Shown: positions 16,180 to 63,826 of the stretch, in pieces
How the letters are laid out: every line of letters starts with the position of its first letter
Position numbering within the stretch: the stretch's first letter is position 1
NCBI RefSeq assembly: GCF_030028105.1
Contig: NC_092380.1
Span: forward strand, 70,057,717 to 70,121,716
Direction: 5' to 3'
DNA length: 64,000 nucleotides
DNA from: Mobula birostris
Taxonomy: Eukaryota
The notes under the pieces: generated by a model
Seen by the model: the letters and a program-made list of their open reading frames with translations, nothing else
Databases searched by the model: none
Told to the model about the DNA's origin: nothing
Translations under genes and position numbers: made by a program

Positions 16180-16493
16180 TCAAAATGTTAAATGAAACTT
16201 TTGTTCTATTCTTTTGCTTGTCTCTGAGTGAAATATCGTACATCTGACTTCCAAGCCCCGATCAGATCGTTCTGGAGCAAATTCTATGCTGGTTGTTGAA
16301 GAAAAAAGACCACTTGCAGTAATCTGAGGTTGACTATTATTCACAGGTCCTGTGAAGGGTTGTTCTCCTTTGAACCACTTCACTTCAATTTCCAGTGGTA
16401 CATAATTGGTCAGTGAAACTGTGAAAGTAGCCATTTTGTTTTCCTCCAGATGTGTTGGGTTGCACTTGATTTCAGACACAGTGGGGAAATGTC
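16180..16493 (-). CDS. Exon 10: post-TM C1-like Ig domain 6, ending in TGA
   Basis: ttccactttaag|GA CAT TTC...TTT TGA. FTVSLTNYVP..VKWFKG..SGLFSSTTS..VRCTIFH; the B-strand Cys is replaced by V. Confidence 0.87.
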
Positions 16494-17499
16494 CTTAAAG
16501 TGGAACACAACATGGAAATATAGTCAGTCCCATTGACTAGAGCTGATTGTTCAAATTCTGACAAATAAATTTTCCAAAGTTAAGATAAATATGTTGAATG
16601 TAGAAATTTCAAATACTAAAGCTTATACAGTAGACAAGACCGCTATAGATTAAAGCATCTGAGAAAATGATATATCACATATATCCAAGTAAACATTCAA
16701 AACGGCACCGTTTGTAGGCTAAATAAATGTCAGCAGGCCTACATAAATCCTTAATCAGGACGGAATATAGGAGTAGAAAGTGGAAACAACAAAATTTATT
16801 AGATAAAGATATTTTCTAGAGTTTAATAAAAAATTATACACTTTCAGGATGGGCAAATAAAAGCATGAATTACTGAGCAGTCGGAAAAGATGTTAACAGT
16901 TTACATGGGAAACTAGGCTGGTTGTGTTTCTGATGAATAGCCAATAACAAGTGTTAAGAAACATAACTTTTACAATGTAGTATTGAAATGCCTTGAGCAA
17001 CTCTTATTAGTGATTCTAAATATCACATCTGGACCCTTGTTTCCAATGACATCATACATTTACTGAGAGGAGTAAAAGTGGGTAATTGAACAAACTCCAA
17101 TCCTCAAATGGAATATTTGATCCTATTATACCCAGTAATCTCATAGATGAGGATCTATAAAAGGCAGCTAAGAGTTAACATATTGCTTTGGTTCTGGAGT
17201 GTGTATAAGCCAGGTTTGCCAAAATAGTACTCTTCCACCTCCAAGCCCATTAGTAAATCAGATAGGTTTAAAAATGGTCCCATAATTATTTTTTAAAAGT
17301 CCTAAAATTGCTAAGGTGTACTTTGTTCTCAAGGCTACAATAATGTCCCACCTAATTCATATGTTGGAAGGTTCAAAATTTGAAATGTTGAAAAATTAAG
17401 TGAAATATGACACTGATTCAGTCACATGCTCAGCTTTTAACATGGATGTAAAAGTGTACTTGGTTTATTGAGTTATCGAATAATCGGAGCAGCCACTTA

Positions 17500-20420
17500 G
17501 AATCACACAGCCACAGAACACTTCAGCATAGAACCAGGCCCTTTGGCTCATCTAGACCATGCTGATCCATTGATCTGCTTAGTCCCATCGACCTGCACCT
17601 GGACCATAACCCTCCATACCTCTCCCATCCAGATACCTATCCAAATTTCTCTTAAATGTTGAAATCGAACCCGCATCCACCACTTGTGCTGACAGCTCAT
17701 TCCACATTCTCACCACCCTCTCAGTGAAGAAGTTTCCCCTTGTGTTCCCCTTAAAAATTTCACCTTTCACCCTTAGCCAATTACCACTAGTTCTAGTCTC
17801 ACCTAACCTCACTGCAAAAAGCCTGCTTGTATTTGCACTATCAATACTACTCATAATTTTTGTACCTCTATCAAATCTCCCCTCAATTTTCTACATTCTA
17901 GGGAATAAAGTCTTAACCTATTTAACCTTCTCCTATAACTCAGGTCCTCAAGTGTTGGCAGTATCCTTGTAAATTTTCTTTGCACTCTTTCAACCTTATT
18001 GGGCAGGTGGCCAAGTGGTTAAGGAGTTCGTCTAGTTTTCTCAAGGTCGCTAGTTCGAGCCTCAGCTGTGGCGGTGCATTTGTGCCCTTGAGCAAGGCAC
18101 TTAATCACACATTGCTCTAGTCTGTGTGAGCAGTGGCGCCCCGCATAGACTTCTAATCTGCACCTTGTAAGGCATGAAAATGCCCGATGCAGGCCTCTCA
18201 TGGTCTGAGTCGATGTTCCCCCCAATCTTATTTACATCTTTCCTGTAGGTAGGTGACCAAAACTGCACACAATACTCCAAATTAGACCTCACACTGACAT
18301 CTTATACAATTTCAACATAATATCCCAATTCCTATACTCAATACATTGATTAATGAAGGCCAATGCTCCAAAAGCTTTCTTTTAAGACTATCTAAATGTG
18401 ATGCCATTTGCAGGAATTTATGGATCTGTATTCCCAGATTCCTCTGTTCTACTACACTCTTCAGTGTCCTACTGCTCTTCATGTAAGACCGGGTTGGTGT
18501 TCCCAAAGTGCAACACCTCACACTTGTCTACATTAAATTCCATTTGCCAGCTGGTCCAGATCCTGCTACATGCTTTGATAGTCTTCCTTGCTGTCCACTA
18601 CACCCCCTAATCATGGTGTCATCAGCAAAGTGGCTGATCCAGTTTACTGCATTATTATACAGATCATTGATGTAGATGACAAACAACAATAGACCCAGCA
18701 CTAATCCCTGTGGCACACTACTAGTCATAGGCTTCCAGTCAGAGAAGCAACCATTTACTACCTCATCATGAATGCCAAGTGTCTGAGGCTTCTTGACCAA
18801 CCTCCCATGCAGCACTTCATCAAAAGCCTCACTAAAGTCCATGTGGGCAACGTCCACTGTCTTGCCTTAATCAACTTTACTGGCTTGTTCCTTGAAAAAC
18901 TCTATAAGATTTGTTAGACAAGACCTACCATGCACAAAGCCATGTTAACTATCCCTAATCAATCCCTATCTATCCAAATACTTATATATCTGGACCTTTA
19001 GACCACCTCCCAATAACATTCCCACTACTGATTTTGTGGCGTATTCATAGAGCCTTTCGTAAACAATGGAACAACATTAGCTATCCTCCAATTCTCTGGA
19101 ACCTCACCCATACCTAAGGATGTTTTAAATATCTCTCCTAGGGTCCCTACAATTTCTGCTCTAGCCTCCCACAGGGTCCAGGGAAATACCTTGTTAGGCC
19201 CTAGAGATTTATCCATCCTAACTCACCTCAAGATAGCAAACACGTCTTCCTCTGTAATCTGTATACGGTCCAAGACCTCACTGCTGCCTTGCTTCACATC
19301 CATAGACTATGCGTCCATCTTCCAGTTAAATACAAATGTAAAAAAATATCCATTCAAGATCTCCCCCATCTCTTTTGGTTTCACTTATAGATTACCACTT
19401 TCATCCTCCAGAGGAGCAATGTTGGTCCTTTGCTATCCTTTTGGTTTTAATATATCTGAGAAGACCTTAGGATTCTCCTTCACCTTGTCTGCTAGAGAAA
19501 CCTCATGCCTTCTTTTAGCCCTCCTGATTTTCTTCTTAAGTGTTGTCTTGCATTTCTTCTACTCCTCAAGAACCTCATTTGTTCCTGCCTGTCTATAACA
19601 TACCTGCTATGCTCTTCCATTTTTGTCTTAACTAGCACCTGATTATCTTTCGAAAACTTAAGGTTACTAAACCTGTTATCCTTGCCTTTTATTCTGACAG
19701 GAGCATACAAACTGTCCCAATTCACACTTGCCAGATCCTCTCTGATACCATCAGAATAGACCTTTCTCCAAATTAGAATCTCAACCTATGGACCAGATCT
19801 ATCTTTTTGCATATTTACTTTGAAAGCAATGGCTTGTGGTCACTGGATGCAAAGTGTTCTCGTACACAAACTTCTGTCACCTGCCCTGTCTCATTCCCTA
19901 ATAGCAAATCAAATATTGCGCACACACTCATTGGGACTTCTATGTACTAATTAAGGAAACTTTCCTGAACACATTTGACAAATTCTATCCCATCAAGCCT
20001 TTATGGAAGTCCCAGTCAATATGTGGAAGGTTAAAATCACCTATTACAACCTCATGTTTCCTGAAAGAGTCAGCAATCTCTCTACAAATTTGCTCTTCTT
20101 AAATCCTGTGGAGTGTTGGGTGGTCCATAATATAATCCCATTAATGTGCTCATGCCTTTCTTAGTCTTCTGTTCTATGCATAAAGCCTTAGTGACCAAGA
20201 TCTCCTGTCTGACACTCCTCCCTCCTCTAATCCCTCCTGCTCTATCACATCTGAAACAACTTAACTCCAGAACATTGACCTGCCAGTCCTGCCCCTCCTG
20301 CAACAAAGTCTCACTAATAGCTACAATGTCATAATTCCATGTGCTGATCCATGCTCTAAATTCATCCGCTTTTCTACAATACTCCTTGCATTGAAATATA
20401 CGCAGATCAGAACATTAGTG
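17500..20420 (-). mobile_element. CR1 ORF2 (APE-RT), degraded, with a SINE inserted
   Basis: Continuous CR1 motifs (MDFSEAFDEVLHGRL, VPQGLVLG, FADDT, ETRTSGNWLRVKG). Confidence 0.85.
18001..18222 (+). mobile_element. tRNA-derived SINE with ~10-bp TSD
   Basis: Box A TGGCCAAGTGG and box B AGTTCGAGCC. Flanked by caaccttatt (17991-18000) and caatcttatt (18223-18232) inside a CR1. Confidence 0.75.
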
Positions 20421-20459
20421 CAACCATGTTCAAACTACTGATTCCCAATTTTGTATGTA

Positions 20460-24201: not shown

Positions 24202-24513
24202 CTGGAAGCGGTAAACGAAACTGCTTTTTAATACCATCAGATGAAAGTCCATTTTTCACCACAATGGCAAATTTCTTATTATAATGCAATGCTGTTGGTA
24301 TAAACTCCAGACAGGAGGACAAATGATAAGATCCATCCTTTTCCATTACGGGGCTTGAATTTTTTACTCCTTTTAAGAAGGGTTCCTCATCCATTAGCCA
24401 TTGGGTGGAAATTTCATTGTGAGAAAAACTGGTTACATTACATTTAAGAACAAGAGGCTGGCCATATAATGGATTTTCTGGCTCGAGAATGACATCAGAA
24501 AGCTTTGGAATTC
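24202..24513 (-). CDS. Exon 9: post-TM C1-like Ig domain 5
   Basis: tttttcttcaaatag|GA ATT CCA...CCA G|gtaagt, 312 nt. LKCNVTSFSH..TQWL..KDGSYHLSS; the F-strand Cys is replaced (FAIVVKN). Confidence 0.87.
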
Positions 24514-27815: not shown

Positions 27816-28139
27816 CTCCAAGATGCAATGTGTGAAAAATCCTCGTGGGTCTGTGAGAAGTTGGAAAATGAAGAGCCTCAACTTTGAAATCAATTTGACG
27901 ATCTTCTACTGAAATTATGTATTTATATCGACTCTCTCTGTAGAAGAAGCCGGTATTTTTATCTATCTCTGGGGTGGTAGAAATTATTTCATTATCATCA
28001 ATCTTCTTATCATTTTTGAACCACATAAACATGACATTCTCTGGAAAGAAGCCATAAGCAACACATAGGAATGTTGCTTCGTTTCCTGGCTCTGGGTATT
28101 GTGGTTCAACCGTCATGTTGTCCATTAATGGAGAAGATA
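27816..28139 (-). CDS. Exon 8: post-TM C1-like Ig domain 4
   Basis: atttacag|TA TCT TCT...GGA G|gtatga, 324 nt. FLCVAYGFFP..FMWFKN..TGFFYRES; the F-strand Cys is replaced (FKVEALH). Confidence 0.88.
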
Positions 28140-30470: not shown

Positions 30471-30782
30471 TCAATTTAAACAATTTACAGCTAGTTTTCT
30501 TGGTGTCTGTCATACTTTCATGCTGGAATTCACACGTTAATAACTTTCCCAAATCTTCTCTTTCAGGAATAAATTTCAAATGACTTGTGCAGCTATAACG
30601 GCCATCTTTTCCCAAGATAGCTTCAGATTCAGCATTCATTTCCTCCAGTATATTATTATCCATTTTCCAGATAACTTTGATGTTTTTTGGGAAGAAGGAA
30701 TATATTCGGCATGATGCATAACCAAATTCTTCTACAATTGGGACTTCAGGAACGATTTTTATATCACCACATTTTGGGATTG
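30471..30782 (-). CDS. Exon 7: post-TM C1-like Ig domain 3
   Basis: ctttgctgcttag|CA ATC CCA...TTG A|gtgagt, 312 nt. ASCRIYSFFPKNIKVIW..KDGRYSCTS..LTCEFQH, both Cys present. Confidence 0.88.
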
Positions 30783-33071: not shown

Positions 33072-33449
33072 CTTTTACGCTTAGTGTAACACCCTTCTGT
33101 ATTTCTGAACCTGTGGACAGATGTTCAGCTTCACAAATATACTCTGTATCATGGTCTTCCTGAATGGTTGGTATAAAAGCAAGAACACTTAAGATACTGT
33201 AAGTATGGTCTTCGTATGTCACCTCATGTAGGGTGTGGGAATATTTGGGAAGATTTGTTTCATTCCCAGCAAAAGTTTCTTGAACTCGTGGTACATATTT
33301 CACAATTTCTTTCAATTTGTCGTTCTGCTTCTGGTACCAAGTGATAGCCAGTGGTCTTGGTTTAAATCCATCAATTGGACAGGACAATGCAATCAATTCT
33401 TCATGAATGATGCAAGGAGGTACTAGAATGTCTGTCATCTTTGGTGCAA
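33072..33449 (-). CDS. Exon 6: post-TM C1-like Ig domain 2
   Basis: aaag|TT GCA CCA AAG...AAA G|gtacag, 378 nt. LSCPIDGFKP..ITWY..DHTYSILS..YICEAEH, both Cys present. Confidence 0.88.
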
Positions 33450-38687: not shown

Positions 38688-39110
38688 TTCCTTCAACTTT
38701 TAATGTGATGGTCTTAATAATAGGCTTTCTCAAATTGCTACTATGCAAAACTTGAAGTTTAAGAACAGCTTCATTATCTCTCTCAATTTCAGGGCAGAAG
38801 ATAACTTCACACTTCAGACTGGAGGTACCATCACTGTTGTTTGTGACAGCTGACATCTCAAATGCAAAAGCTTCCACTGGACATTCATAATCTGAAATAA
38901 GTCTCTGCTGATCGATCTCCTCAGGTGCTTTCAAGTTCTCAGACGGAGAAGTCCACTGGTAAATGCTATGTTCTGTTCCGCCATTTATTTGTAGAAACCA
39001 TTGAATAGAAATATTTGAAGGTTTATATCCAGATATCTGACAAGTCAGAACAGTTTCTTCCAAATGTACAATGCGTGGAGGCTGGCTGATATCAGAAACT
39101 TTAGGAGGTA
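38688..39110 (-). CDS. Exon 5: post-TM C1-like Ig domain 1 (with acidic insertion)
   Basis: tttttctag|TA CCT CCT AAA...GGA A|gtaagt, 423 nt. VLTCQISGYKP..IQWF..NSDGTSSL; the F-strand Cys is replaced (LKLQVLH). Confidence 0.88.
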
Positions 39111-41455: not shown

Positions 41456-41522
41456 TTCACTCAAGCATCATCATGTGAAAGCCATTTTCCTTTATAGGAA
41501 TCCACTTTTCTTCACCACTTGA
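40623..41522 (+). CDS. Open Gag-like ORF with N-terminal hydrophobic helix, truncated in the zinc knuckle
   Basis: KPFTPGEKQSILSELP capsid-like N-terminus, MHR-like IQKADETGMGYAECKYRAYEEYSG, and partial CFAC knuckle (41436-41447). The frame then runs into flanking DNA. Confidence 0.7.
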   Translation: MSSGTQKWQIVEYILCGFIFCVLWELVWGYLRKRFYPDRSTRMAPTEIKQRQVENPDDLSQPLTLIMTIHKPFTPGEKQSILSELPSVKVTHGNSEFWCKLEEMVEIHQMHPKDIHVLVKAKCPRNMWDKMARGVQAGTWATTRSASNEERYRSFNGEVRQWLEGGKSSWGTIMAVIQKADETGMGYAECKYRAYEEYSGLDNPGRDDPVLLKMLKEGLSSAQQEVVDLGITVGPNYSAIVSWASEIDQRKCNRNDKVCIVDAAAVMSRRVCFACRQYSLKHHHVKAIFLYRNPLFFTT

Positions 41523-44914: not shown

Positions 44915-45778
44915 ATGTTTTTAAGGTCTGCTATGTCTAAGAATGGAAAAAACGGGAAGGACGGCAAACCTCCGGGTAGACCGAAAGGTACCGATTTTCC
45001 TCCGACTGAACCACCGGTGACTTTGAAAGCTATATCGGAGCTAATTCAAAGGGAAATTTCAACCTCTATTACGGAGCTGATTCGTGAGGAAATTTCAATT
45101 AGTTTCCAGAAAATTGCCGATTCAATCGAGAAGATACAAATATCTATTACGGAACATCAGTCGGCTATATCTGATCTTCAAAAATCCACGCAACAAAGTG
45201 AGCTCAAGATGGAGAAAATCGAAGAAACAATTAATGTAATGAAGAAGAAACTCGACTTTCTGACCTTTAAAAACTCTCATTTAGAATCCAGAATGCGACG
45301 GCAGAATCTTCGAATGATTGGGGTGCATGAAGCTGTTGAATCTGATAACCCTATGAAGTATTTTTGTCAACTTTTAAAAGATGCATTTCCTACTGTATTT
45401 CCTGACCAACCACCGTTATTGGATCGTGTTCACAGAGTTCCATCATACTTGCTTAGGTCAGATAAACCTCGACATGTCATTTTACGTTTTCATTACTTTC
45501 AAGACAAGGAGAAACTGTTTCGTTTCGTTCGATCTAAAGGTTACATTGATTTTCTGGATCTTAAGTTCCGATTCGTGGAGGATTTCAGTAAACCAATCCG
45601 GGATCAACGGGTTCGTTACAGATCTGTGATGTCGGAACTCTACAAGATGGATTTAAAACCAGCGCTGCTCTACCCTGCACGTCTAAGGATTCGTACGTCG
45701 GATGGAGCCCTCCGTTTTTTTGAATCTCCATCGGATGCCCAGAGTTATCTGGATCAATTTTCACCTTCGACATCTTAA
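44915..45778 (+). CDS. L1 ORF1p (intact; coiled coil, RRM, CTD)
   Basis: LESRMRRQNLRMIGVHE, LDRVHRV..PRHVILRFHYFQDKE and ALLYPARLRI motifs. Start at ATG 44915 or 44933. Confidence 0.9.
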   Translation: MFLRSAMSKNGKNGKDGKPPGRPKGTDFPPTEPPVTLKAISELIQREISTSITELIREEISISFQKIADSIEKIQISITEHQSAISDLQKSTQQSELKMEKIEETINVMKKKLDFLTFKNSHLESRMRRQNLRMIGVHEAVESDNPMKYFCQLLKDAFPTVFPDQPPLLDRVHRVPSYLLRSDKPRHVILRFHYFQDKEKLFRFVRSKGYIDFLDLKFRFVEDFSKPIRDQRVRYRSVMSELYKMDLKPALLYPARLRIRTSDGALRFFESPSDAQSYLDQFSPSTS

Positions 45779-46492
45779 TCGTAATTTTTAACTATCTCCG
45801 TTGATCGGAGGTTGTGAATTTGTCAGTCTTAATTTTGTTTTTGTCCTATATGGGCAGAAAAGTTTATTTTTGATTATTTAATATGATTGCTAAACTTTCT
45901 TTTTTAACTGCGTCATTCCTTTCTTTTTCCCAGGGGATTCTGGGTGGTTATTCCCTCACCGTCATTTTACGTATTTCCTTTGTGGCCTTAAATTTTGTAG
46001 TTTTTTAAATCTACTTTGTTTTGTAGGTTTTCATAATTAGTTTATGTTAATAATCTCATTTTTTTTTGTTTTGTTTACTTATAGGGTTTGGGATTTGTTG
46101 CGGTTTTTTTTATATTTTCTGGCTTTTACTCTGTTATATTATGTGTTTGTTTTAATTGAGTTACCTTTTTTTATTCTCTTACTGTTTTATAATTAGCTGA
46201 TCTTTTTTCATATTTACACTTTTTTTAGGGAGCGTATACCGGAAGTCATGGGGGTAGCTTTAGTGCTTGCTTCTTTCGGGCTGGTCTGCGTTAGATTTAG
46301 CCTTGGGGTCATGGGGTGGGGGGTGGTGGGAGGGGCTTCACGTTTTAGCTTCTTTCTTCTTGGGCTATGTACACTATTGAAGTATTGGTTGCGTTCTTCT
46401 TCCCGGTATCTCTTATTTGTTCTGTTCCCTTTCCAGGTTCGTGGGTCGAGCCTATCGTCAATCCTCCTTGATGCGGGTTGACTTTAGGGTTT

Positions 46493-49400
46493 ATGGAGTC
46501 TATTATTAATTTTGTCTCCTGGAGTACTAATGGTCTCAATCATCCTATTAAAAGGAAAAAAGTTTTTAAAGTGTTCCGGAGACTTAAAGCATAAATTTTA
46601 TTTTTACAAGAGACCCATGTGCGGAGGGGGGACAGACTACGTTTTTTTAAATTCTGGAAGGAACAACAGTTTCATTCGAACTCCAATGCTAAGATTCGAG
46701 CGTCTCTATTTTTATAGACTCCTCAGTTACTTTTATCCAACATGATATTATTTCTGATCCGAACGGTAGATCTCTATTGGTTAGTGGTCTACTATTTAAT
46801 AAAAAGGTAGTTTTGGTTAATGTTTATGCTCCCAATATGGACTGTCCGGAATTTTATAAATTATTATTCAATCAGTTCCCGAATTTGAATGAGTTTTCAT
46901 TGATCTGGGGCGGAGATCTTAATACCTGTTTATCTCCAGCTTTGGACCGTTCGGCTCCTCTACGGACCTTACCTAATAAATCTGCAACTTTGATTAATTC
47001 ATTCCTCTCTGATTCTGGGTCGACGGACATTTGGCGTTTTTTGCATCCTCAGGAAAAAGATTTTTCTTTTTTTTCACATGTTCACCATTCCTATTCAAGA
47101 ATTGATTATTTCTTTATTGATTCTCGTCTTATTTCTTCAGTGATTAAATGTGATTATGACTCTATAACCATTTCGGATCATGCTCCACTTAAGCTTTTTA
47201 TTAAAATTCAGGCCAATACACAAAATAATAGACAATGGCGTTTTAATTCGCTGTTGCTTCAGGACTCGGACTTTGTTAACTTTATGAACTATACAAAGGA
47301 TATTTCTGTGAACATTCTTTGGGATACTTTTAAAGCTTATATTCGTGGTCAGATTATCTCGTATTCTGCTGCTTTGAGGAAGAAGCTGAAGCAGGAGGAG
47401 TTGGCAATCGTGGACAAGGTTAAGAAAATTGATAAGAAATATGTTATAGCTCCTTCTGAGGAGTTATATAAACAAAGAACTGAACTTCAAATGGAACACA
47501 GTTTATTACTTTCGTCCTCGATTGTAAACCAATTAAAGAAAACAAGAAGTGAATTTTATGTACACAGTGACAAAATTGGCAAACTGTTGGCTAATCAACT
47601 GAAGTCTAATTATGCTAAATCTCAAATTAATCAGATTTATAACCAAAATGACCGACTGATACTTGATCATGTGGGGATTAATCAAACTTTCTGTGATTTT
47701 TATTCTTCCTTATATCAATCAGAGTCTCCTCGAGATTCTAAATATATGAATGATTTTTTTAGATAATCTAGACTTCCCTGAGATTTCACAGGATATGTCT
47801 TCTATGTTAGATACTCCCATTACCACGGATGAGATTAAGAATGTTATTTTCTCTATGAATTTGGGGAAAGCTCCTGGCCCTGATGGGTTTACCGTAGAAT
47901 TTTATAAATGTTTCGCACCTTCATTAATCCCTTGGCTCTGTAGGGTTTTTGAGGCTTCATTAAAACTTGGTAAACTTCCTGAATCTTTCAATAGAGCGTC
48001 AATCTCTCTAATATTAAAGAAGGATAAAGATCCTGCTCAATGCGCATCTTATAGACCAATATCTTTATTAAATGTTGATTCTAAAGTTTTTTCTAAGTTA
48101 TTAGCAAATAGATTAGAAAAAGTACTTCCTTTTATTATTTCGGAAGACCAAACGGGTTTTATTAAAGGTCGTTACTCTTTTTATAATATTCGCACACTGT
48201 TAAATATTGTTTATACCCCCTCACAAAATGTTCCTAAGTGTGTTATCTCTTTAGATGCTGAGAAAGCTTTTGATAGAGTAGAATGGCCTTACTTATTTAA
48301 GGTGCTTGAAATGTTTAATTTTAGCTCGAAATTTATATCCTGGATTAAATTGTTACATCATTCTCCTGTGGCCTCGGTCCATACTAACTCTCTAAGCTCA
48401 CCTTTTTTCCCTCTTTTTCGAGGTACTCGACAAGGGTGTCCTCTTAGTCCTTTATTATTTGATATTGCATTAGAACCTCTTGCAATTGCCATTCGAGAAT
48501 CTCCAAATATTACTGGGATAACTCGGGGCTTAAAGTCCCATAAAATATCACTCTATGCTGATGACTTACTTTTATATATTTCTAATCCCCAAAAATCCAT
48601 CCCTGCTGTTTTAGAGTTATTAGCACAATTTGGTCTTTTTTCAGGTTATAAATTAAATCTTAGTAAGAGTGAACTTTTCCCGATTAATAAACAACTTCCC
48701 TTATATCATAACTTTCCATTTAAATTGATTAATAATTATTTTTCATATCTTGGGATTAAAATTACTTCTAAATACAAAGATTTATTTAAGATTAACTTTT
48801 TACCCTTAATTGACCATATTATTCAACTTTCATCTAAATGGTTTCCTTTATATTTAACTTTGATTGGTCGTATTAATGCAGTTAAGATGTTTTTTTTGCC
48901 AAAATTTTTATATATATTTCAGGCATTACCAATTTTTGTTCCAAAATCTTTTTTTGATAAAGTTGACTCCAAAATTTCTTCATTTATTTGGCAAAATAAA
49001 AACCCGAGACTGGGTAAAATAAATTTACAGAAAGCTAAGAGAGATGGAGGTTTAGCATTACCTAACTTTAGATTTTATTATTGGGCAATTAATATTCGAC
49101 ATATGAAATTTTGGTTACTTGACCAGGATATACTATCCATTCCTAAATGGGTAGCATTGGAATTACAATCTGTTCAGGGCTATACACTTGGCTCTATTTT
49201 AGGTTCCTCTCTTCCTTTTGATTTGAAATGCCTTAAACAGGTGTCTAACCCGATAGTTAAATATACCTTACTTATTTGGTTTCAATTCAGAAAATTTTTT
49301 GATCTTAACCAATTTGGGCTAGCGATTCCTATTTTAGGTAACATATTTTTTCCTCCCTCTTTTACGGATCGTGCTTTTCAAATTTGGAAGACTAAGGGTA

Positions 49401-50237
49401 TTTCACGGTTTTTGTATTTTTAGATGGTTCCCTTATGTCTTTTGAACAATTATCTAATAAATATAATTTATCAAGAATACATTTTTTTTTAGATATCTAC
49501 AAGTTAGAAATTTCCTAAGTACTATACTTTCTTCCTTTCCAATGTCTCCTCCTACATACATTTTAGATACTATAATTAACCTTAATCCATGTCAGAAAGG
49601 TGCATCGGCTATTATTTATAATATTATTATGAAACTTAGGAAAGCTCCATTTGATAAGATTAGGTCAGATTGGGAACAAGAATTGGGATCTATTATTTCC
49701 GTGGATGACTGGGGGCAGATTTTACAATTAGTCAATACTTCCTCTATCTGTGCTAAACATTCCCTAATTCAATTTAAAGTTGTCCATAGAGCACATATGT
49801 CCAAAGATAAATTAGCTCGCTTTTATTCTCATATTAATCCTTTTTGTGATAGATGTCCGGGGCAAATAGCTTCTTTAGCTCATATGTTTTGGTCTTGTCC
49901 TACTCTGGAAACTTTTTGGAGAGACATTTTTAATATTATCTCCAAGGTATTGAATATAGATATCTCTCCTCACCCGATTACTGCTATCTTTGGACTACCT
50001 AAAATTTCCAGTAATCTTTCTCCTTCAGCCCGTAGAATGATTGCATTTCTTACTTTAATGGCGAAAAGATGTATCTTACAACATTGAAAAGAGCTTAATG
50101 CTCCAACTACCTTTTTTTGGTTTTCTCAGATGATATTATGCTTGAATTTGGAGAAAATTAGAAGCAATCTTTATGACTCCTCATTTAAATTTGAACAGAC
50201 CTGGAGATCTTTTATTCAATATTTTCATTTAATGTAA
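46493..50237 (+). pseudogene. L1 ORF2 (APE-RT-CCHC), disrupted
   Basis: SWSTNGLN..QETH, SDHAP, GKAPGPDGF, LDAEKAFDRVEW, RQGCPLSPLLF, YADD and CDRC..HMFWSC motifs. Frameshifts near 46560, 47755 and 49420-49500; stop near 50085. Confidence 0.92.
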
Positions 50238-51029
50238 TATATACCCTTCTTGTTTTTTTTTTACTGTTTTTAATGGAGGTCGGGATTGAGGATGTGATTT
50301 TAACTTTTTTAACTCTGTCTGGTTTCAAGTTAGCCCATTGCTTTGCTTTGCTTTTAGTTAGTTGCACGGTGGGTTTTTTTGGGGGGTTTTTTTTTCCTTT
50401 TCTCTATTGATATATATATAAAAATTAGTACACTATTATGTTACCTTGGTACGTTATGTTTAAATTACATTGTTTGTACCATTTTTTTGTATTAATATCT
50501 CCTGTAATTTTATTATATTCTAACAGTGTATTAGTGCCTATATGGCTTACCTTTTTGTATACTTATTCAATAAAAAGATTTACAAAGAAAGAAAGAAAGA
50601 AGTATCATAAAGAAGGAAGGCAAATACATTCAGAGAGCAAATTCCAGAACTGTGTAATCAACAGCCAATGGAGGTAACAAGCTTAAAAGTGACACATAAA
50701 CCTAACTATACAGCATAAAACATAATAGATTTTAGTCAACCTTGTTTCTAAAAGGTAAAATAATGAAAACGGGCCAGGAATGTATCCTTTTTATTTCACA
50801 TGTATTTGTTGTATAGACTTTGTAGCTTTAAATTGAAAAATTCCTAAGTAAACACAAAGTGGCTAATGCACAATACCAAATGTAGTGTTTCATAACATGG
50901 AGAAGTCTAAATTTTACTTTCTAGTAAAAATTATTTTCAGATCAAATTTAATTTAAACTTTAAGATTCTTAATCAAATATACCTATCTTATCAGGTTTCC
51001 ATGCCTAAGTGCTGCAAATAGTGAAGGAG

Positions 51030-51520
51030 TAACTGGGGATGATTTACGAGGATTATTCCTGGAATGCAGGAGCTAACATATGAGGAGCGTTTGTCGGCTC
51101 TTCGACTGTATTCATCAGAGTGTAGAAGAATGAGAGGGGATCTCATAGAAACATTTCGAATGTTGAAAGGGTTGGACAGAGTAGATGTGGAAAGGCTGTT
51201 TCCCTTGGTGGGTGAGTCCAGGACAAGAGGCCACAGTCTTAGAATTACAGGGTACCCATTTAAAACAGATGAGGAGAAATTTTTTTTAGCCAGAGGGTCG
51301 TGGACTTATGGAATTTGTTGCCACATAAAGCTGTGGAGGCCCGATTATTGAAGGTGTTTTAGGAGGAGATTGATAGGTATCTAATTAGTCAGGGTAACAA
51401 GGGATATGGGGAAAAAGCAGAAAATTGCAACTAGTTGGAAGAATAGTTTAGCTCATGGTGGAGTGGCAGAGCAGACTCGATGGGCCGAATGGCCTACTTC
51501 CACTCCTTTGTCTTGTGATC
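51030..51520 (+). mobile_element. CR1 3' fragment
   Basis: RMRGDLIETFRMLKGLDRVDVERLFPLVGESRTRGHSL. Confidence 0.85.
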
Positions 51521-51725
51521 TTGTGAACTGCAATGAGGCCTAGAAGGCGAATTGACGACTCATCACAAAGAAATATATTTTAAACAAATGCTTTCCCAGG
51601 GATCAGCTAAGAATTACCTGTTCAGTAAGATGCACTTAAGGCAATGTAGTGCATTCGAATAAATGTGTGAGACACAGAAAAGGAGTTAATTATTCATGTT
51701 TCTGATGTACTGAAGCATATCTTAC

Positions 51726-51842
51726 CTTTTCTGAAATATCGCAGGTACATCACAAATCCAACGATCATGATCAGTGAACATATCAGTACACTAGCAAATA
51801 CACTGCCAGCTATTATTCCCACTGGCACAACAACTTCTGGCT
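51726..51842 (-). CDS. Exon 4: transmembrane helix EPEVVVPVGIIAGSVFASVLICSLIMIVGFVMYLRYFRK
   Basis: ttttttcacag|AG...AAA G|gtaag, 117 nt, symmetric phase 1-1. About 25 hydrophobic residues followed by RYFRK. Not reported in the ORF track in this frame. Confidence 0.9.
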
Positions 51843-52599
51843 CTGTGAAAAAACAAGCTTTAATAATGAATATTTATATATTTTTAATTTATTCAAAAAC
51901 AATGGTTAATCTTAAAGTTGGAAGATTATTTTGGGTTGGAGATTCTTCAGAATTGCGTTAACATTAATTTATCTTCCTTTGCCATTGATAATTTAAGCAT
52001 TTCTTGACTTTACATAAGCTTTAGAATATTATATTTTTTTAAATCACACTACAAAATAACTTTCATAAATGCACAAAACTAGCAAAACCCATCTGGTTCA
52101 TAAATTCTCTTCACAAGAAGAAATTACTTGGTCTGGCTTATATGAGCTTCCAAACCCTCCAAAGTGATTGACTCTTTTTATGTGCCCTCTAAACAAGTAC
52201 CACAATATGAAAACATTGTAAGCATGAAACAAGTGGACCACCCAGCATCAATATAGGCATCAAAATCAGATGCAGCAAACTAGCTCCCATCTTGCCAACT
52301 TTGCAAAGTCCTCCACACAAAAATATGCTCAGTGGGAGATTTCTCTACAGACTAGCTAATAAACAGCCTTACATAATCATGTGCATGTAATTATACGATG
52401 CCTGATTATTTGACCACAATCCATTGGTACATCCTGTCCACTATCCTTTAAAGAATCCTTCAATATGAGTCTATTAATTAGCAATGTCTCACTACACAAG
52501 GCTAGAACCAAAACAACTAATATCCCAGTTAGTTCAAAAATGACTTGATTCAGACAGCTCTCTCAAATGCATTTGATGAATTTGGTCTGTAGCTACGTT

Positions 52600-52870
52600 T
52601 CAGCGTCATAGAAAAAGTACAGGACAGAAATAGGCCCTAATTCTCATCTCGTCCATGCTGGATCATTTAAGATGCCTACTCTCATTGACCTACACCAGGA
52701 CCATAGCCCTCCATACCCGTACAATCCATGTAACTATCCAAACTTCTCTTAAACAGTGATATCAAGCTTGCATGCACTACTTGTGCATGGTGGCATTTCA
52801 TTCCACACTGTCACGCCAAGTGAAGAAGTTTCCTCTCATGTTCCCCTTGAATTTTTCACCCTTAACCCTT
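52600..52870 (-). mobile_element. CR1 3' fragment
   Basis: Same 3' sequence as 10790-11100 and 17500-17800. Confidence 0.75.
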
Positions 52871-53362
52871 GACCTCCCAGCCACCCAAATTTCATATCTT
52901 ATGTTTGTCTGGTCTCTACTAAAAAAATAACATCCCCCAAAATTAGTACCTTACAAGTTTTTTTTGTTATAAGCTTCCAGTTTGAAGGTTTTTATTATTG
53001 TTTTGTGCTCCAAACATGTATACCAAAACAATGTCTTTCAATTTCTAGTTAAAACCTTGTGATTACAAAAGCTGCTAATGGAAGCATGAAACTGCATTTG
53101 TATGTTTTGTAAATATCCTTGGGATAAAGAAATGTGCCATGCTTATCTATTCATAATTCCAGATCTAGCAATCTGGTAGAATCTTAACTATCTTCTCAGT
53201 CCAGGGACAAATTGGGATGGGTAAAACTTGTCAACATTATCGTTAATGTCCACATCCCATGAACAAAGTAATAAAGTCTCATAACAACATGTTAGCCTTC
53301 ACTTTATGCCTATATTTTCCATTACAAACTTAATGTGCACATAAAGTAAGCTCAACACTTAC

Positions 53363-53683
53363 CTTTTACACTCAGAGTGGTTTCCAACTTTTCACCATTA
53401 CGAAGTGATCTGTGTCTCACAAAGCATATGTAAACATTAGAATTATCTTGGAGCGATGGCCGTAACCTCATACGACTAGAAACACTGTAGGTTCCATCAT
53501 TATTTTTAATTGGGGATCCTGTGCAGAAATGCTTCAAAATCTTTTCTTCTCCATCTTTAGATTTCTTTAACCAGCTCATCTCAATTGCCTTGGGATAAAA
53601 ACTGGTACTGCTACAGCTTACTGATTTTTCAGTACCATTCTCAATTGTGATGGCAGTTGAAGATAATATCACATTTGGTTTGG
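53363..53683 (-). CDS. Exon 3: extracellular IgC1 domain
   Basis: tttacag|CC...AAA G|gtaagt, 321 nt. SVSCSSTSFYP..EMSW..NNDGTYSVSS..YICFVRH is a C1-set signature with both Cys. One N-glycosylation sequon (NGT). Confidence 0.93.
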
Positions 53684-54419
53684 CTGTAAAGATATAATAT
53701 AGTCATAATTTAATATTAAATACCTTTTGCATCTATTGAATCAAACAATTACTGCACATGTTAAAATTTTCACAGTTGAAGATAGCTCTTCCTGATAATT
53801 AAAGTGTAAAGATGTAGGTTAATCACGTCTCTACTCCCAGAACACAAACTTGTGATTTTGCCATTCTGTAGTTTAATGCACAAAATACCAACCATGTAAA
53901 TGGTAATATGAAGTTGAGCATGAATATTAAACATCATCTTATCACTGGGCTGGCTATCATCTTAAAGCTGAGTACACCTGAGACACTCTCCAGCACCAGA
54001 TTTCAATATCTATTGACAGGTTTGTTCCTTCCACACTCATGAATAGAGGTATTCATATAATTATGATAGAGCAAGACAAAATTTATTTAATTTGCAGTAG
54101 AGAGAGCATTTTATATTTTAGGAAAGCATCTTGCAACAGCATTTCCAAAATCTCATTTTGGAGATAATCTGCAACTATATTAAGAAGTTTACAAGTAAAA
54201 TAAATGGCAAAACACTGTTTGAAAATGTACCTTGTTGACAGAATTCTAACTTTCAGCACAAAAAAAAGTCAGAGGACATCACCTTGTGCAGATGCTCTGT
54301 ACATCACTATATTATAGTATAAATTTCACCACCAGTGTTATTTATTAATAATGTTCCAAAATTGCAACTATGGCAACACATTGGTGTAACACTGCTGATT
54401 TAGTTGAAGGATTAGAAAG

Positions 54420-54695
54420 ATTAGCTTTATTTGTCACTTGTACATACATTGAAACATAGAGTGAAATGCATCACTTGCATCAAATCAAATCAGCGAGGAT
54501 TGTGCTGGGCAGCCTTCAAGCGTCGGCACATTTCTGTTGCCAACGTAGCTTATAACTCACTAATCCTAATCTTTGAAATGTGGGAGGAAACTAGGGGGAA
54601 CATACAAACAGTGGTGGGATTGAACCCTGATCTTACAGCTGGCACACTGCAAAGTGTTGCTCTAACCGCTATGCCATCATGCCGTCCCAGCTATG
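54420..54695 (-). mobile_element. tRNA-derived (HE1-like) SINE
   Basis: Box A TGGCATAGCGG and box B GGTTCAATCC on the minus strand near 54620-54680. Confidence 0.6.
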
Positions 54696-54877
54696 TGACC
54701 ATGCATAAAGCCCTCAAAACTTTAAAACTGACTGTTATTTTAAATTTATAGGGGTATCATTAAACTGCTTGCAACTACACGCATAAATATCAGTGAATAC
54801 CTTCCTTGATCAAATATGCTGCCACAGTAATTCGACAGTTTGCATAAGGGGAAGAATTCATGCTTTATTATTTTTAC

Positions 54878-55234
54878 CTGAAACAGTCATGGAAGATTTT
54901 CCTTCTCCATTCTCTGAGTTAATAGAAACAATGCAGGTGTAATCTCCTTCTTCATTAAATTGCACAAGTGGAAGAAAAAGAGAAGCAATTCCCTTCTTCA
55001 ATTCGTTGTCAAATATTTCAGCTCCTTTTCTGTATGGCGTATGCTTGCCTCCAGTGAACTGATATACTTCTTGTCTGTCAGAAGAGTCAGGTTTTTGAAA
55101 GAACCACTGAACTGCAACGCTTCTAAGGTCAATTTCAGTGGCCTTGTAACCAAACACACGGCATTCAAGAAGAACATCTTTATTCACAGTGGCTTCCACA
55201 ATTTTTGTATCCATAGACACTGTTAAGTCACCTT
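54878..55234 (-). CDS. Exon 2: IgV domain, B7-H6/NCR3LG1-like
   Basis: ttgcag|AA...TCA G|gtaaaa, 357 nt. Contains LLEC..VQWF..VYQFTGGKHTPYRKGAEI..LKKGIASLFLPLVQFNEEGDYTC, the B7-family V-set pattern with both canonical Cys and the Trp. Confidence 0.93.
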
Positions 55235-55819
55235 CTGCAATAATTAAGGTCAAAATTATCATTAGTAAGCCAATAATTTTCTAATTTATCTTCCAACTGC
55301 AGGGAAGTAATTTTAGATTGAGGCTGTTTTTGCCTATCAACATGAAGTTATGCTACATTTTTATTATGAAAGTGCTTAACAACTGACACACTTGACAATA
55401 GGCACTCTCATGGGATGACAGGAAATACAACTGGCCTCTACTACCGGCATCTACTGTTAACTAATTATGGTTTTAAAATCCTGAGGAATTTACTAGAACT
55501 TTATTTTAAACAATGCGTTCCTTCCAAAAAACTGAAGAACTATTCCCCCTCTCCTCTCCCTCGACCCTCCCCTCTTTCCTCCCCCTCCATCGGCCCTCCC
55601 CTCTCCTTTGACCCTCTCCCCTTCCATCCCCTCCCCTTCCCTCCCACACTCCCACCCCTTTCTCTCCCCCTCCTCCCTCCCCCCTCAAAAATCGACTTAT
55701 AGATGTGTTTAAAAACGGAATTGATTGGTTACCCAGGGGTGTGCTATACTGAGATGTGACATGGGAGGTGAATATCAGCAGAAACAATGACAAAATACAA
55801 ATGGATGAGATAAGTATCA

Positions 55820-56770: not shown

Positions 56771-57740
56771 CAGTCGGCCCCTCCTTATCCGCGAGGGATT
56801 TGTTCTGAGACCCCTTGCGGATACCAAAAAACGCAGATGCTCGAGTCCCCTATTCAACCTGTCTAAATGCGGTGGACCTTAGAACCCAGTGGTACCCCGG
56901 ACCTTATTGAGCCTGTCTAAATGCAGTGGACCTTAGGACCCAGTGGAACCCCAGACCTTATTTAACCTGTCTCAGAACAGTGGACATTAGGGCCCGGCGG
57001 CGGAGCTCTGAATCCACAGTGTTTCTGTTCACGAAAATAAGCACGATCACGATTGAAAATAAAGTGGAAATAATGAAGCGATCAGAAAGAGGTGAAACGC
57101 CATCGGTCATAGTAAAAGCGTTAGGCTACAATCGGTCAACGATTGGAACAATTTTAAAGGATAAAATGAGAAAGGCCCTGCCCAATTAAAGCTAAAATTA
57201 TTACTAAGCAACATTGGGTTTTGGGGTTTGGGGTTTGGGGTTTTGGGTTTTTGATCCTCCACATCAACCCGGCAGGGATGGAGAGCACTCGGGAGCGGTC
57301 TGTCACTGGATCGAACTCAGGAATTTCCATTCCCGAGCCTGGCACTGAAACATACGTTTCTTAAGTGTTTTATATGCATAGAAAGGTAAAATATACACTA
57401 TATACTAAGACAAACGTTTGACTAACTGACGCTAAATAATACCGGATGTACCTGTTCCAACTTACTTAGTAAGAGAACTTCCGTTTTTTTTCGATCCCGA
57501 TCNNNNNNNNNNNNNNNNNNNNNNNNNNNNNNNNNNNNNNNNNNNNNNNNNNNNNNNNNNNNNNNNNNNNNNNNNNNNNNNNNNNNNNNNNNNNNNNNNN
57601 NNNNNNNNNNNNNNNNNNNNNNNNNNNNNNNNNNNNNNNNNNNNNNNNNNNNNNNNNNNNNNNGGAAGAGCACTTCCAGGTTTTCTCGATTTGTGGTTGG
57701 TTGAATTCGTGCATGAGGAACTCGAGGATAAGGAGGACTG
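56771..57740 (+). mobile_element. Tigger/pogo non-autonomous element spanning the gap
   Basis: TA|cagtcggccctccttatccgcg ... cgaggataaggaggactg|TA termini. CENP-B-type HTH remnant ITIENKVEIMKRSERGE..STIGTILKDK. Internal ~55-bp tandem duplication at ~56850-56990. Confidence 0.8.
57503..57662. other. Assembly gap (160 N)
   Basis: Run of n in the sequence. Confidence 1.
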
Positions 57741-58244
57741 TACCTGATACAACACAATATTTCAAATTTATTTGGCTGAAATGTTAAACTACACTTCACT
57801 CATTGTTTCACTTTTGGGTAAACAAGTTTGCAGAACTGAATATGTCCATTTGTCAGCAATTTCACTTCACGGCCTCATATTGGCATCAGATTGAAGTGAA
57901 CACATCAAATTTCACAAAAAAATGTCATATAATTTAATGCTTAGTGGTATAATATTTTACCTCACAAATTCAAATTTTCTCCTTTTTCCTAAATATTAGT
58001 TCTTACAGTTGTGTTGATTCAATAGCCAAGAAAAAAATCATCAATAGCACGATAGCAATTAAATTTTACAGCATTTTGGTTATGTAAGCTTGGACATGTA
58101 AAGTAGATTAGAGTCCACAATTGTTCTTCCAAATCTGAAACCTGCAATTGCTTTCAAACACTTTTCCTATTACTACATGGATATTTGTTTGTATCCATGT
58201 GATCCACAGAAACGACACGTTGACACAAAATCAAAGCTTCATAA

Positions 58245-61685: not shown

Positions 61686-62284
61686 GGGTGCCTGTAAATT
61701 AGGCATTCATAACCTGGAAATGCCTGTGTATGTCTTTTGAGCCTGGCACATTCATTAATGTTACTTTTATGAAAGTTAAGAGGTTAAATTGTTTCAAGTT
61801 GGCCTGGGCTTGGATGATTGATGTGTTAGGCTTGGGCTTTGATGTTTGCTTAAAATAATTAAAAAGCATTCGATGAGATAGATAAATCAAGATTGAAAAT
61901 AACTTTAAAATTAATGCCTGGCCATTCAGGTGATGTCAGAAAACACCACAGCACCTCACGTATAGTGAAGAATAGCCATCCACCAAAAAGGCATTGAAGT
62001 TGAATAGTAAAGAATATGTCAGAACTGCTACCAATAGTCCTTGGACCTCCAGAAAATAAATAAGTCTGGAAATGGAAAATATAGCAAATCTCAGTTAATA
62101 GTAACCAGAAACCCGTTGAAAGTCCTTTTTGATTCACTAAGGTCTTTCAGGGAAGGAAGTACACACAAATTTATTGTGTGTGTTTCACACAAGCATAGAG
62201 CAACTCAAATAAGGATCAATTTCACTGTGAAGAAATGACACAGTATCAGCGTTCCCTTGGTGTCACAAGCACGAAAAAATATCC

Positions 62285-63180
62285 AATCACAAACAAGCAA
62301 ATATCTGCAGATGCTGAAAATCCAAGCAACACACACTAAATGCTGGAGGAACTCAGCTGGCCAGGCAGCATTTATGGAAAAGAGTAAACTGTCTACGTTT
62401 CAGACTGAGACCCCTCAGCAGGACTGCAGAAAAATAGGTGAGGGGTCAGAAGGTGAGGGGAGGGGTGAATAAAGAGCTGGGAAGTTGATTGCTGAAAGAG
62501 ATACAGGGCTGGAGAAGGGGGAATCTAATAGGAGAGGACAGAAGGCTATGGAAGAAAGAAAAGGGAGAGAAGTACCAGAGGGAGGTGAAAGGCAGGCAAG
62601 GAATAAGGTGAGAGAGGGAAAAGGGGATAGGGAATGGTGAAGGTGGGGGGGGGGGAGGGCCATAACGGGATGTTCGAGAAATCAATGTTTATGCATTTAG
62701 ACTGGAGGCTACCCAGATGGAATATAAGGTGTAACTACTCCAACCAGAGTTTGGCCTCATAGCGACTGTAGAGGAGACCAGAGATTGATGTTAGAATGGA
62801 AATGGAAAGTGGAATTAAAATGGGTGGCCACTGGGAGATCCCACTTTTCTGTTGGACAGAGCGTAGGTGCTCGGTGAAGCAGTCTCCCAATCTATATCGG
62901 GTCTTACTGACATAGAGGAGGCCACACCAGTAGCACCACACAGTAGATGACCCCAACAGACTCACAGGCGAAGCATCGCCTCATCTGGAACGACCTCTGG
63001 GGCCCTGAAGGGAGGAGGTGTAGGGGCAAGTATAGCACTTGTCCCTCCCCCAAGCTTCTAACTGACTCCTCATCTTTTTTTCCTCCAGTCCTGCTGGAAG
63101 TGTCTAGGCCCAAAACGTCAACTTGTACTCTTTTCCACAGCCTAGCCTGCTGAGTTCCTCCAGCATTTTGTGTGCTTTGC
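62285..63180. mobile_element. Penelope-like element with inverted terminal repeats and GIY-YIG remnant
   Basis: The 62285-62430 and 63090-63180 ends are inverted copies. The minus strand encodes GLLYVSKTRYRLGDCFTEHLRSV (GIY-YIG). Confidence 0.7.
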
Positions 63181-63703
63181 ATGAAAAACATCCAGTCTTG
63201 TTGTTTCTTTTTAGTGTGGAGGAAAGGGACAAGAGAATATGAAATGACCTAAGGTATATGAAAAGCTCAAGTATCTATAGGCCATCCATAAGATATTAGA
63301 TGCAGACAAGCCTTAGTTATCCATGTGAACTTTACAAGCGAGTAAATTTAAATCAGATGACACCATTGGAGCAACTCCTGAGACCTACACTGACCTTGTA
63401 TTTCTCATGTCTTACTGATCTCCTGGAAAGGGGGTTAAATGTAAACAACGAAACCCAATTCGGTACCTGCCCCTAGTCAATGACCTCGGGAGCACCCAAA
63501 ATCGGGAAGGGAAAACATATAGAAATGTTTCCATACACTTAAAAATATAGAAACCGATATGAGAATCTAACCTGTGACTTAGTGAGAGATTCGCTTTGCC
63601 CTAATCGTGCCTGTAAGTCCCGGAAGTCCATGCAGCAGCCTCGGCATAACCCTCAACCCCGAAGCCTGGATCACTGGATCAGAGCCCCCGTCCCTCGTTT
63701 TAC

Positions 63704-63779
63704 CTGAAAGTCGGAGCAGAGCCAAGAGCGTGACCACCCGGGGTACGAGGCGCGGCGAAAGTTTCCCGGCGCAGGCCAT
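63704..63779 (-). CDS. Exon 1: signal peptide MACAGKLSPRLVPRVVTLLALLRLS(E)
   Basis: ATG in strong Kozak context (gaggccATGG) inside a CpG island. Basic N-region plus hydrophobic core VVTLLALL. Ends TCA G|gtaaaa (phase 1), in frame with the IgV exon. Confidence 0.8.
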
Positions 63780-63826
63780 GGCCTCTTAACTTTCCTGCAT
63801 TTCTCCGTGTGAACGCCTATCGTGGG

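Follow-up and report, generated by a model that had tools for sequence, protein, structure and literature searches.

B7-H6 (NCR3LG1) is a key stress and tumour ligand for NK cells. The human protein is a ligand of NKp30 with a short, Gag-related tail, and what is known of its evolution comes mostly from ectodomains. Butyrophilins such as BTN3A1 join a B7-like V-C ectodomain, through one transmembrane (TM) helix, to a folded beta-sandwich on the cytosolic side, and their intracellular B30.2 domain controls the activity of the B7-like ectodomain. C1-set immunoglobulin (Ig) domains usually pair and, to our knowledge, all characterized C1-set domains are extracellular or lumenal.

Within a 64,000-nucleotide stretch of the Mobula birostris genome (the window), we analyzed a minus-strand gene that is the M. 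birostris member of an ancient jawed-vertebrate B7-H6 (NCR3LG1)-like gene family. The manta protein shares with human B7-H6 a signal peptide, an IgV-IgC1 pair, one TM helix, and one phase-1 exon per domain, whereas its tail consists of six C1-set Ig domains in place of the short human one. Butyrophilins are the nearest functional analogue, but their intracellular module is a B30.2 (PRY-SPRY) domain: no exon of the manta gene gave a Pfam match to SPRY or PRY, the precomputed Pfam lists of homologues contained Ig families only, and membership in the butyrophilins was therefore rejected.

UrIg2 and Ig heavy chains likewise have a row of C1-set domains behind their V domain, with a separate exon for each, and UrIg2 is among the PDB matches of the manta tail (PMC12227049). 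In those molecules, however, the TM segment follows the last C domain and all Ig domains are extracellular, whereas the manta TM segment (residues 255-285 of 977) follows the second domain and leaves six Ig domains C-terminal to it, so a UrIg/UrIg2 or heavy-chain type was also rejected. Titin, obscurin, and MyBP-C contain Ig arrays that work in the cytosol and give generic fold matches to the manta model, but these are soluble I-set proteins with neither signal peptide nor TM helix, whereas the manta tail scores as C1-set and, in a protein of the secretory pathway, comes after a TM helix. The accessible literature on cytoplasmic or intracellular Ig domains, on B7H6 in sharks or Xenopus, and on NCR3LG1 with gag yielded no description or function for a V-C1-TM-Ig tail architecture.

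Gene structure and transcripts

The gene comprises ten phase-1 exons, for which all AG acceptors and GT donors were found (Table 1). Spliced together, they encode a 977-aa ORF with a signal peptide, IgV, IgC1, TM segment, and six C1-set domains, identical to RefSeq XP_072128565.1 (M. birostris, "uncharacterized protein isoform X1"). The first-pass annotation, made from the sequence, had proposed exactly this ten-exon reading frame and had guessed that automated annotations of such proteins might already exist; the exon signals and the RefSeq identity uphold the former, and the RefSeq model together with the family entries upholds the latter.

Table 1. Features of the B7-H6-like locus (window coordinates).
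Feature	Position	Strand	Description
Exon 1, signal peptide (SP)	63704..63779	-	Start codon and signal peptide, 25 aa plus 1 base; phase-1 donor
Exon 2, IgV	54878..55234	-	Pfam V-set 4.9e-09; RNA depth; RNA joint 53683->54878
Exon 3, ectodomain IgC1	53363..53683	-	Pfam C1-set 5.8e-12; RNA joints on both sides
Exon 4	51726..51842	-	117 nt: connecting peptide, TM helix, RYFRK stop-transfer; symmetric phase 1-1
Exon 5, D3	38688..39110	-	C1-set 22.4 bits; 95-100% contained in RNA runs X1-X4
Exon 6, D4	33072..33449	-	C1-set; Cys pair in 24/24 and 23/24 sequences
Exon 7, D4b	30471..30782	-	C1-set; Cys pair invariant
Exon 8, D5	27816..28139	-	C1-set; F-strand Cys missing in 24/24 family members
Exon 9, D6	24202..24513	-	C1-set; F-strand Cys retained in 4 amphibians only
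Exon 10, coding part, D8	16180..16493	-	Ends ...HLTF, stop TGA 16182-16180
Probable 3'UTR	15930..16179	-	AATAAA from 15979; inferred by contig-length arithmetic
LINE-type retroelement in intron 4	44915..50087	+	ORF1 and RT ORFs; outside gene product
Assembly gap (N), intron 1	57503..57663	.	Between SP and V exons; touches no coding exon

The signal-peptide exon matches the M. hypostoma orthologue at its N-terminus. Three lines of data speak against a hidden exon within the intron-1 gap: RNA contig X3 reaches 156 nt upstream from the V exon, same-organism RNA runs, X1 among them, contain 63704-63859 (the SP exon plus 5'UTR), and orthologues run colinear through the SP/V junction. A tblastn search with the M. 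hypostoma paralogue matched only exons of the present gene, so exons of a neighbouring paralogue in the window were rejected. A search of the minus strand, in positions 1-16179 and elsewhere, revealed neither another TM exon nor hidden exons for the tail. The D8 C-terminus is common to Pristis, Hypanus, and other batoids, among which the stop position is conserved. A donor-like GGTAAAT directly follows the stop codon of exon 10.

In four RNA runs from the same organism, contig depth fell on exons of the gene only, and the LINE-type element in intron 4 had very high, repeat-type depth. The manta contigs use the exact V/C1 and C1/TM junctions; the 51842->53363 joint, one of two junctions that the first-pass annotation marked for checking, was recovered in all four runs. 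These data show that V, C1, and TM are spliced into one long manta transcript. Beyond the TM donor the contigs extend 2311-3054 nt without a break, and this length, together with the recovery of the D3 exon, suggests that the sequence is D3-D8. In the X1 contig the 2311 nt exceed the 2064 nt of D3-D8 by 247 nt, and we therefore assign a probable 3'UTR downstream of the stop. Read-through of the TM donor as the source of a short-tailed isoform (RYFRKGKICFSTSET-stop) was rejected, because RNA depth at 51501-51700 was zero in all four runs.

Transcripts from other species carry the same layout. The skate RNA contig L001 (3517 nt) has an uninterrupted 958-aa ORF in which TM is joined directly to D3, and the elephant shark protein V9K7L7, derived from cDNA, has the same uninterrupted V-C1-TM-Ig tail. 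Four further skate Logan proteins of 944-958 aa, full or near-full length, fall in the 90% cluster of the TM-containing P0188. The proposed V-C1-TM-tail architecture is supported by transcripts of three species. Its TM-D3 junction is seen directly in skate and elephant shark; in manta the contigs continue unbroken, and the probable identity of what follows is indicated by length and by the recovery of the D3 exon.

These transcripts bear on whether the gene model is an artefact, in which two units, a short V-C1-TM gene and either a distinct multi-C1 gene or a decaying exon array, were chained by their shared phase. The TM-to-D3 intron is indeed 12.6 kb long and full of retroelements, and phase-1 Ig exons join in frame in any run. 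However, the manta contigs run 2.3-3 kb past the TM donor with neither read-through nor a nearby tail exon, the intron-free skate contig and the elephant shark sequence join TM to D3, and both the strong purifying selection on the tail (below) and the conserved batoid stop speak for one gene. We regard the artefact as extremely improbable and close to refuted. The gene is real, expressed, and ancient.

Ectodomain and tail domains

The V-C1 part is most similar to B7-H6. Its best PDB match was human B7-H6 (phmmer 5.5e-32, vs 7e-20 for CD276, the next family), and Foldseek aligned the ectodomain with B7-H6 at a TM-score of 0.90-0.92, an rmsd of about 2 Å, and 31% identity, so that the earlier "B7-H6-like" label stands. 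Membership in the B7/B7-H6 (NCR3LG1) group is supported by a signal peptide and IgV-IgC1 pair most like B7-H6 and with a predicted single-pass type I anchor after the C domain, judged by a TM exon that has a basic C-flank and is included in the RNA contigs. The disulfide Cys of V-C1 are invariant and its sequons conserved; V-C1 must therefore be lumenal.

The tail contains six C1-set-derived Ig domains over about 690 aa. D3, D4, D4b, D5, D6, and D8 scored 22.4-49.8 bits against PF07654 (C1-set), for which the gathering cut-off is 21 bits; the ectodomain C1 exon likewise exceeded its gathering threshold. AlphaFold2 pLDDT was 85-93 across the eight Ig domains; D3, which includes a low-confidence loop of ~25 aa, reached about 80-88 except at residues 347-369. 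On these models, the tail domains are confidently predicted to fold as Ig. The canonical B-F Cys pair of D3, D4, and D4b is kept in 18-24 of 24 sequences, and D5, D6, and D8 lost one partner Cys in the common ancestor. The C-strand Trp is invariant in five of the six tail domains and variable in D3.

Among elasmobranchs, identity was 55-64% in the tail vs 67-70% in the ectodomain, and the two Mobula species shared 94-98%. At the level of sequence, these comparisons show a tail about as conserved as the ectodomain and under strong purifying selection. The nearest solved relatives of the tail are all extracellular (IgA/IgG/IgM CH, SIRP, CD22, and UrIg2), and for it a whole-model Foldseek search returned generic multi-Ig matches only.

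Membrane topology and TM-exon skipping

The TM segment has a typical core of 25 residues with a mean hydropathy of 2.7, and its C-flank carries a charge of +3 to +6 in cartilaginous fishes, in agreement with the positive-inside rule. The 977-aa ORF contains no second strongly hydrophobic segment besides the signal peptide and the TM segment, as the first-pass annotation had claimed in describing a single TM exon followed by RYFRK. From the signal peptide, the single TM segment, and the positive C-flank, we infer a type I membrane protein with its tail in the cytosol.

Glycosylation and cysteine patterns were compared between the two parts. The tail has no conserved sequon, in agreement with a cytosolic location: only position 795 is shared by even 8 of 24 sequences, whereas two positions reach 8/24 in the much shorter ectodomain. 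Non-canonical, non-conserved Cys number 1.46 per 100 aa in the tail vs 0.13 in the ectodomain. Total Cys density, 2.7% in the tail vs 2.8% in an extracellular medaka multi-Ig control, did not discriminate that control and was dropped as an indicator; because it is no higher than in the control, the free-Cys argument for a cytosolic tail is suggestive at most. Counter to a cytosolic tail, the Cys pairs of D3, D4, and D4b are kept as if disulfide-bonded.

This last feature would also fit a non-canonical topology, in which the hydrophobic segment is re-entrant or poorly integrated, or is used as a signal anchor by a leaderless isoform, and the tail is lumenal or at the surface. The uncharged stretch of 31 residues (counting the VVVPVG lead-in) and a RefSeq isoform of 945 aa that lacks the SP exon point the same way. 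However, the ordinary core and basic flank of the segment, the lumenal requirement of V-C1, and the lack of a second hydrophobic segment in the ORF all speak against it, and the intron-1 assembly gap may have produced the leaderless model as an effect of annotation. We judge this topology to be very improbable.

A different alternative places the working C1-like domains outside the cell, with a TM-skipped, secreted eight-Ig protein as the key product: a soluble B7-H6-like molecule on an Ig-constant-like stalk, the cytosolic tail of the anchored variant being incidental or degraded. RefSeq lists isoforms that lack exactly the TM exon in two sharks and one frog (Carcharodon X2, Cetorhinus X2, and Bombina X2). 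The exon is symmetric (117 nt, phase 1-1), so that its skipping would route the same six tail domains into the secretory pathway, and secretion is also in keeping with the extracellular solved relatives and with the conservation, in D3, D4, and D4b, of canonical Cys pairs and Trp pins. On the other hand, IgSF genes as a rule have symmetric TM exons, and skipping at a low level is a frequent form of noise. The four manta runs gave no sign of TM skipping: they assemble the TM-containing path only, and the contigs are unbroken at the C1 donor. The skate Logan proteins cluster with TM-containing P0188, V9K7L7 has the TM segment, and the TM exon is kept and conserved in every lineage. The lost partner Cys of D5, D6, and D8, the many variable tail Cys, and the weakly shared sequon at position 795 likewise count against secretion, which we consider unlikely as the main route.

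The probable product of the main mRNA is thus a type I protein with a B7-H6-like ectodomain outside the cell, one TM helix, and six C1-set domains in the cytosol.

Proposed role of the tail and family distribution

In this probable type I protein, an IgV-IgC1 ectodomain with a fold very near that of the NKp30 ligand B7-H6 would be displayed outside the cell, and the six C1-set domains directly after the TM segment would be placed in the cytosol by standard topology rules. The first-pass annotation proposed a putative intracellular scaffold or sensor. Because C1-set domains usually pair, we take as the likeliest working model a rigid rod, perhaps dimerizing, formed by the tail beneath the membrane. 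Such a rod would cluster the ligand or couple intracellular state to ligand display, much as B30.2 acts on the ectodomains of butyrophilins; clustering and state coupling are purely hypothetical functions. Skipping of the symmetric TM exon in a minor splice form could set free a soluble protein with all eight Ig domains.

A more far-reaching reading is tentative, and we hold it somewhat doubtful: the tail may be the first cytosolic antibody-constant-type array, coupling intracellular state to NKp30-ligand display or clustering; the gene may represent the ancestral B7-H6; and the TM exon may act as a switch between cytosol and secretion. If so, the family would be an ancient, conserved exception to the rule that C1-set domains are secretory or extracellular, and it would become possible to test a new inside-out mode of control over an immune ligand, akin to butyrophilin B30.2 sensing. 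Mammals would later have swapped the tail for a Gag-derived one, and the Gag-like mammalian tail would be the replacement for a lost module.

The family was found in about 20 cartilaginous fishes and in bichir, lungfish, coelacanth, amphibians, and lizards. The search for orthologues with a V-C1-TM-(C1)n layout, proposed in the earlier annotation, thus returned dozens, from Chondrichthyes to squamates. Among the retrieved proteins, 130 (a count that includes isoforms and cluster members) have a single TM segment located at residues 180-360 and, behind it, a tail of 300 aa or longer, and sequence comparison shows the whole architecture to be conserved from chimaeras to lizards. NCBI calls the lizard, axolotl, and some frog members NCR3LG1, and by this naming they would be putative orthologues of the mammalian gene. 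This large, expressed family, conserved over more than 400 million years, stands under a database label that reads only "uncharacterized protein".

Gene structure and domain identity

Ten minus-strand exons, each of phase 1 and bounded by AG acceptors and GT donors, joined into a single 977-aa ORF. The first-pass annotation had proposed such an ORF, with signal peptide, V, C1, TM and Ig tail, and the splice sites, Pfam assignments and database identity all supported it. The joined ORF was identical to RefSeq XP_072128565.1 (handle P0201), a Mobula birostris "uncharacterized protein isoform X1", so the guess that automated annotations already exist was correct. The TM exon translates as PEVVVPVGIIAGSVFASVLICSLIMIVGFVMYLRYFRK; besides the leader, it encodes the sole strongly hydrophobic segment of the ORF, in agreement with the earlier claim of no second TM helix. 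An assembly gap at 57503-57663 lies within intron 1 and affects no exon.

Exons of the receptor gene and mobile-element or probable mobile-element features of the TM-to-D3 intron (D3 to D8, tail Ig exons)
Feature	Position	Strand	Remarks
SP exon	63779-63704	-	signal peptide
IgV exon	55234-54878	-	Pfam V-set
IgC1 exon	53683-53363	-	Pfam C1-set, above curated cut-off
TM exon	51842-51726	-	hydrophobic segment
D3 exon	39110-38688	-	Pfam C1-set, above curated cut-off
D4 exon	33449-33072	-	Pfam C1-set, above curated cut-off
D4b exon	30782-30471	-	Pfam C1-set, above curated cut-off
D5 exon	28139-27816	-	Pfam C1-set, above curated cut-off
D6 exon	24513-24202	-	Pfam C1-set, above curated cut-off
D8 exon	16493-16180	-	Pfam C1-set, above curated cut-off
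LINE-type element, near full-length	44915-50087	+	TM-to-D3 intron; very high repeat-type RNA contig depth
368-aa ORF	40416-41522	+	same intron; Gag-like by eye

The best solved relative of the ectodomain was human B7-H6 (E 5.5e-32), followed by CD276 (7e-20) and TAPBPR, and its AlphaFold2 model superposed on B7-H6 with a TM-score of 0.90-0.92, an rmsd of ~2 A and 31% identity, which bears out the proposed B7-H6 likeness. The tail matched the C1 domains of IgA, IgG, IgM and IgE heavy chains, SIRP, CD22 and shark UrIg2 best (E 1e-10 to 1e-6). Using the 24-sequence family alignment, AlphaFold2 returned eight confident Ig domains at a mean pLDDT of 83.9, with low confidence limited to the leader, the TM region and D3 loop 347-369.

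Its ectodomain and membrane anchor place the manta protein in the B7 family, as a B7-H6-like member. It lacks a B30.2 domain and so is no butyrophilin; nor is it of the UrIg2 or Ig-heavy-chain type, in which the TM segment follows the last domain and not domain 2 as here (UrIg2 is described in PMC12227049). A titin-type I-set protein was also rejected as its identity. Full-text literature searches, the 2012 and 2015 B7H6 evolution papers excepted, turned up no described B7-type receptor with Ig domains on the cytoplasmic side.

Transcript and family evidence for the layout

Logan contigs from four same-organism RNA runs were mapped on 49301-55300. Depth fell only on the V, C1 and TM exons and on retroelement repeats, and the joints 53683->54878 and 51842->53363 were exactly as predicted, the latter being one of two junctions singled out for checking. 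In these four runs no depth was detected immediately 3' of the TM donor, and hence no short-tail form made by read-through. Three contigs (3109, 3857 and 3852 nt) span V-C1-TM and then continue for 2311, 2903 and 3054 nt past the TM donor, outside the mapped stretch; the D3-D8 exons total 2064 nt and an AATAAA lies 200 nt past the stop, compatible with the shortest contig. The D3 exon was 95-100% present in the same four runs, and the SP exon and 5'UTR were present in same-organism runs, run X1 included.

The second junction, TM to D3 (51726-39110 in manta), was seen directly in two other species; in manta it is deduced from contig-length arithmetic. A 3517-nt skate RNA contig (SRR5172151, locus L001) carries an unbroken 958-aa ORF reading ...MYLKILKKVPPKVSEIAKPP..., in which TM is joined directly to D3. 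Elephant-shark UniProt V9K7L7, presumably cDNA-derived, has the same continuous layout and differs from genome models at several residues.

Searched with phmmer against 1.84 billion representatives, the D4 exon had 190 matches; of the best 60, most show a single hydrophobic segment (residues ~230-330) and then several Ig stretches. Scanning the retrieved proteins, isoforms and cluster members counted, yielded 130 with a single TM segment and then an Ig tail. Named members of the family range from Chondrichthyes to lizards: ~20 elasmobranchs, Callorhinchus (two adjacent paralogues), Erpetoichthys, Protopterus, Latimeria, amphibians (caecilian, newt, axolotl, several frogs) and two lizards, Zootoca and Lacerta. 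Among the matches of these non-exhaustive searches, none with this layout came from a bird, mammal or teleost. Members are annotated "natural cytotoxicity triggering receptor 3 ligand 1" in lizards, axolotl, Bombina and Rhinophrynus, and "uncharacterized protein" elsewhere. Orthologues from M. hypostoma (95% identity to the manta protein), Hypanus (87%) and Pristis (77%) share the C-terminal end ...HLTF. We conclude that this architecture is real, and that it is both ancient and expressed.

Compartment and possible role of the tail

In the 24-sequence alignment the tail is about as conserved as the ectodomain (55-64% vs 67-70% identity for V + C1 among elasmobranch orthologues), and its domains are 94-98% identical between two Mobula species. 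This conservation indicates that the tail is functional coding sequence.

A cleavable leader, a single TM helix and the positive-inside rule together predict, by standard criteria, a cytosolic location for the main product's six C1-set domains. Several signals favour this location. In cartilaginous fishes the TM C-flank carries a charge of +3 to +6 and the N-flank -3 to +1; tail N-glycosylation sequons occur at about random density, and a single one (position 795) reaches 8 of 24 sequences; the F-strand Cys is never present in D5 and occurs in D6 only in four amphibians; and the B-strand Cys of D8 is almost never present. Non-canonical, non-conserved Cys also favour it, at 1.46 per 100 aa in the tail vs 0.13 in the ectodomain, a signal that is only suggestive because total tail Cys density (2.7%) is not above that of an extracellular medaka multi-Ig control. 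Speaking against a cytosolic tail, D3, D4 and D4b keep their canonical Cys pair in 18-24 of the 24 sequences.

In the main rival reading, the tail Ig domains have their chief importance in a TM-skipped form that is secreted; a non-canonical topology and a gene-model artefact are less likely than this. RefSeq X2 isoforms lacking exactly the TM exon exist in Carcharodon (742 vs 781 aa), Bombina (1051 vs 1085 aa) and Cetorhinus, making a secreted eight-Ig form plausible in some species. In manta, the TM-containing path alone was assembled; Logan contigs lose rare variants, so a minor TM-skipped form may occur there too.

C1-set domains usually pair, and a cytosolic tail would therefore most likely form a sub-membrane Ig rod, possibly dimerising. 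We infer that such a rod might bring NKp30-ligand-type ectodomains together in clusters or control them from the cytosolic side, much as the B30.2 domain does in butyrophilins. The D3 loop (residues 347-369; window ~38870-38940) is an acidic, low-pLDDT insertion, …SPSENLKAPEEIDQQRLISDYE…, conserved between manta and sawfish; in a cytosolic tail it might serve as a linear motif.

Gene ends and flanking DNA

The M. hypostoma orthologue starts 7 codons upstream (MQESKEAMACA...); in manta that frame is stopped (MQES*EA; window 63788-63802, minus strand), which leaves the ATG at 63779, further downstream, as the manta start codon. At the other end, the D8 stop TGA (window 16179-16183, minus strand) lies immediately 5' of a donor-like GGTAAAT. 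This may be a relic splice donor, since the Callorhinchus paralogue LOC103174895 continues past the equivalent domain through an acidic linker (DGDDDEVDEP...) into a seventh Ig domain.

The intronic LINE-type element encodes a 287-aa ORF1 and reverse-transcriptase ORFs of 329, 557 and 181 aa; the 368-aa ORF probably derives from another mobile element. A tandem paralogue adjoins the gene, with consecutive LOC numbers, in Callorhinchus, Latimeria, Microcaecilia, Amblyraja and M. hypostoma, and no exon of such a neighbour was detected in window 1-2000. That stretch, GC-rich (54%) and with overlapping Pro/Ser-rich ORFs on both strands, is a possible CpG island or repeat.
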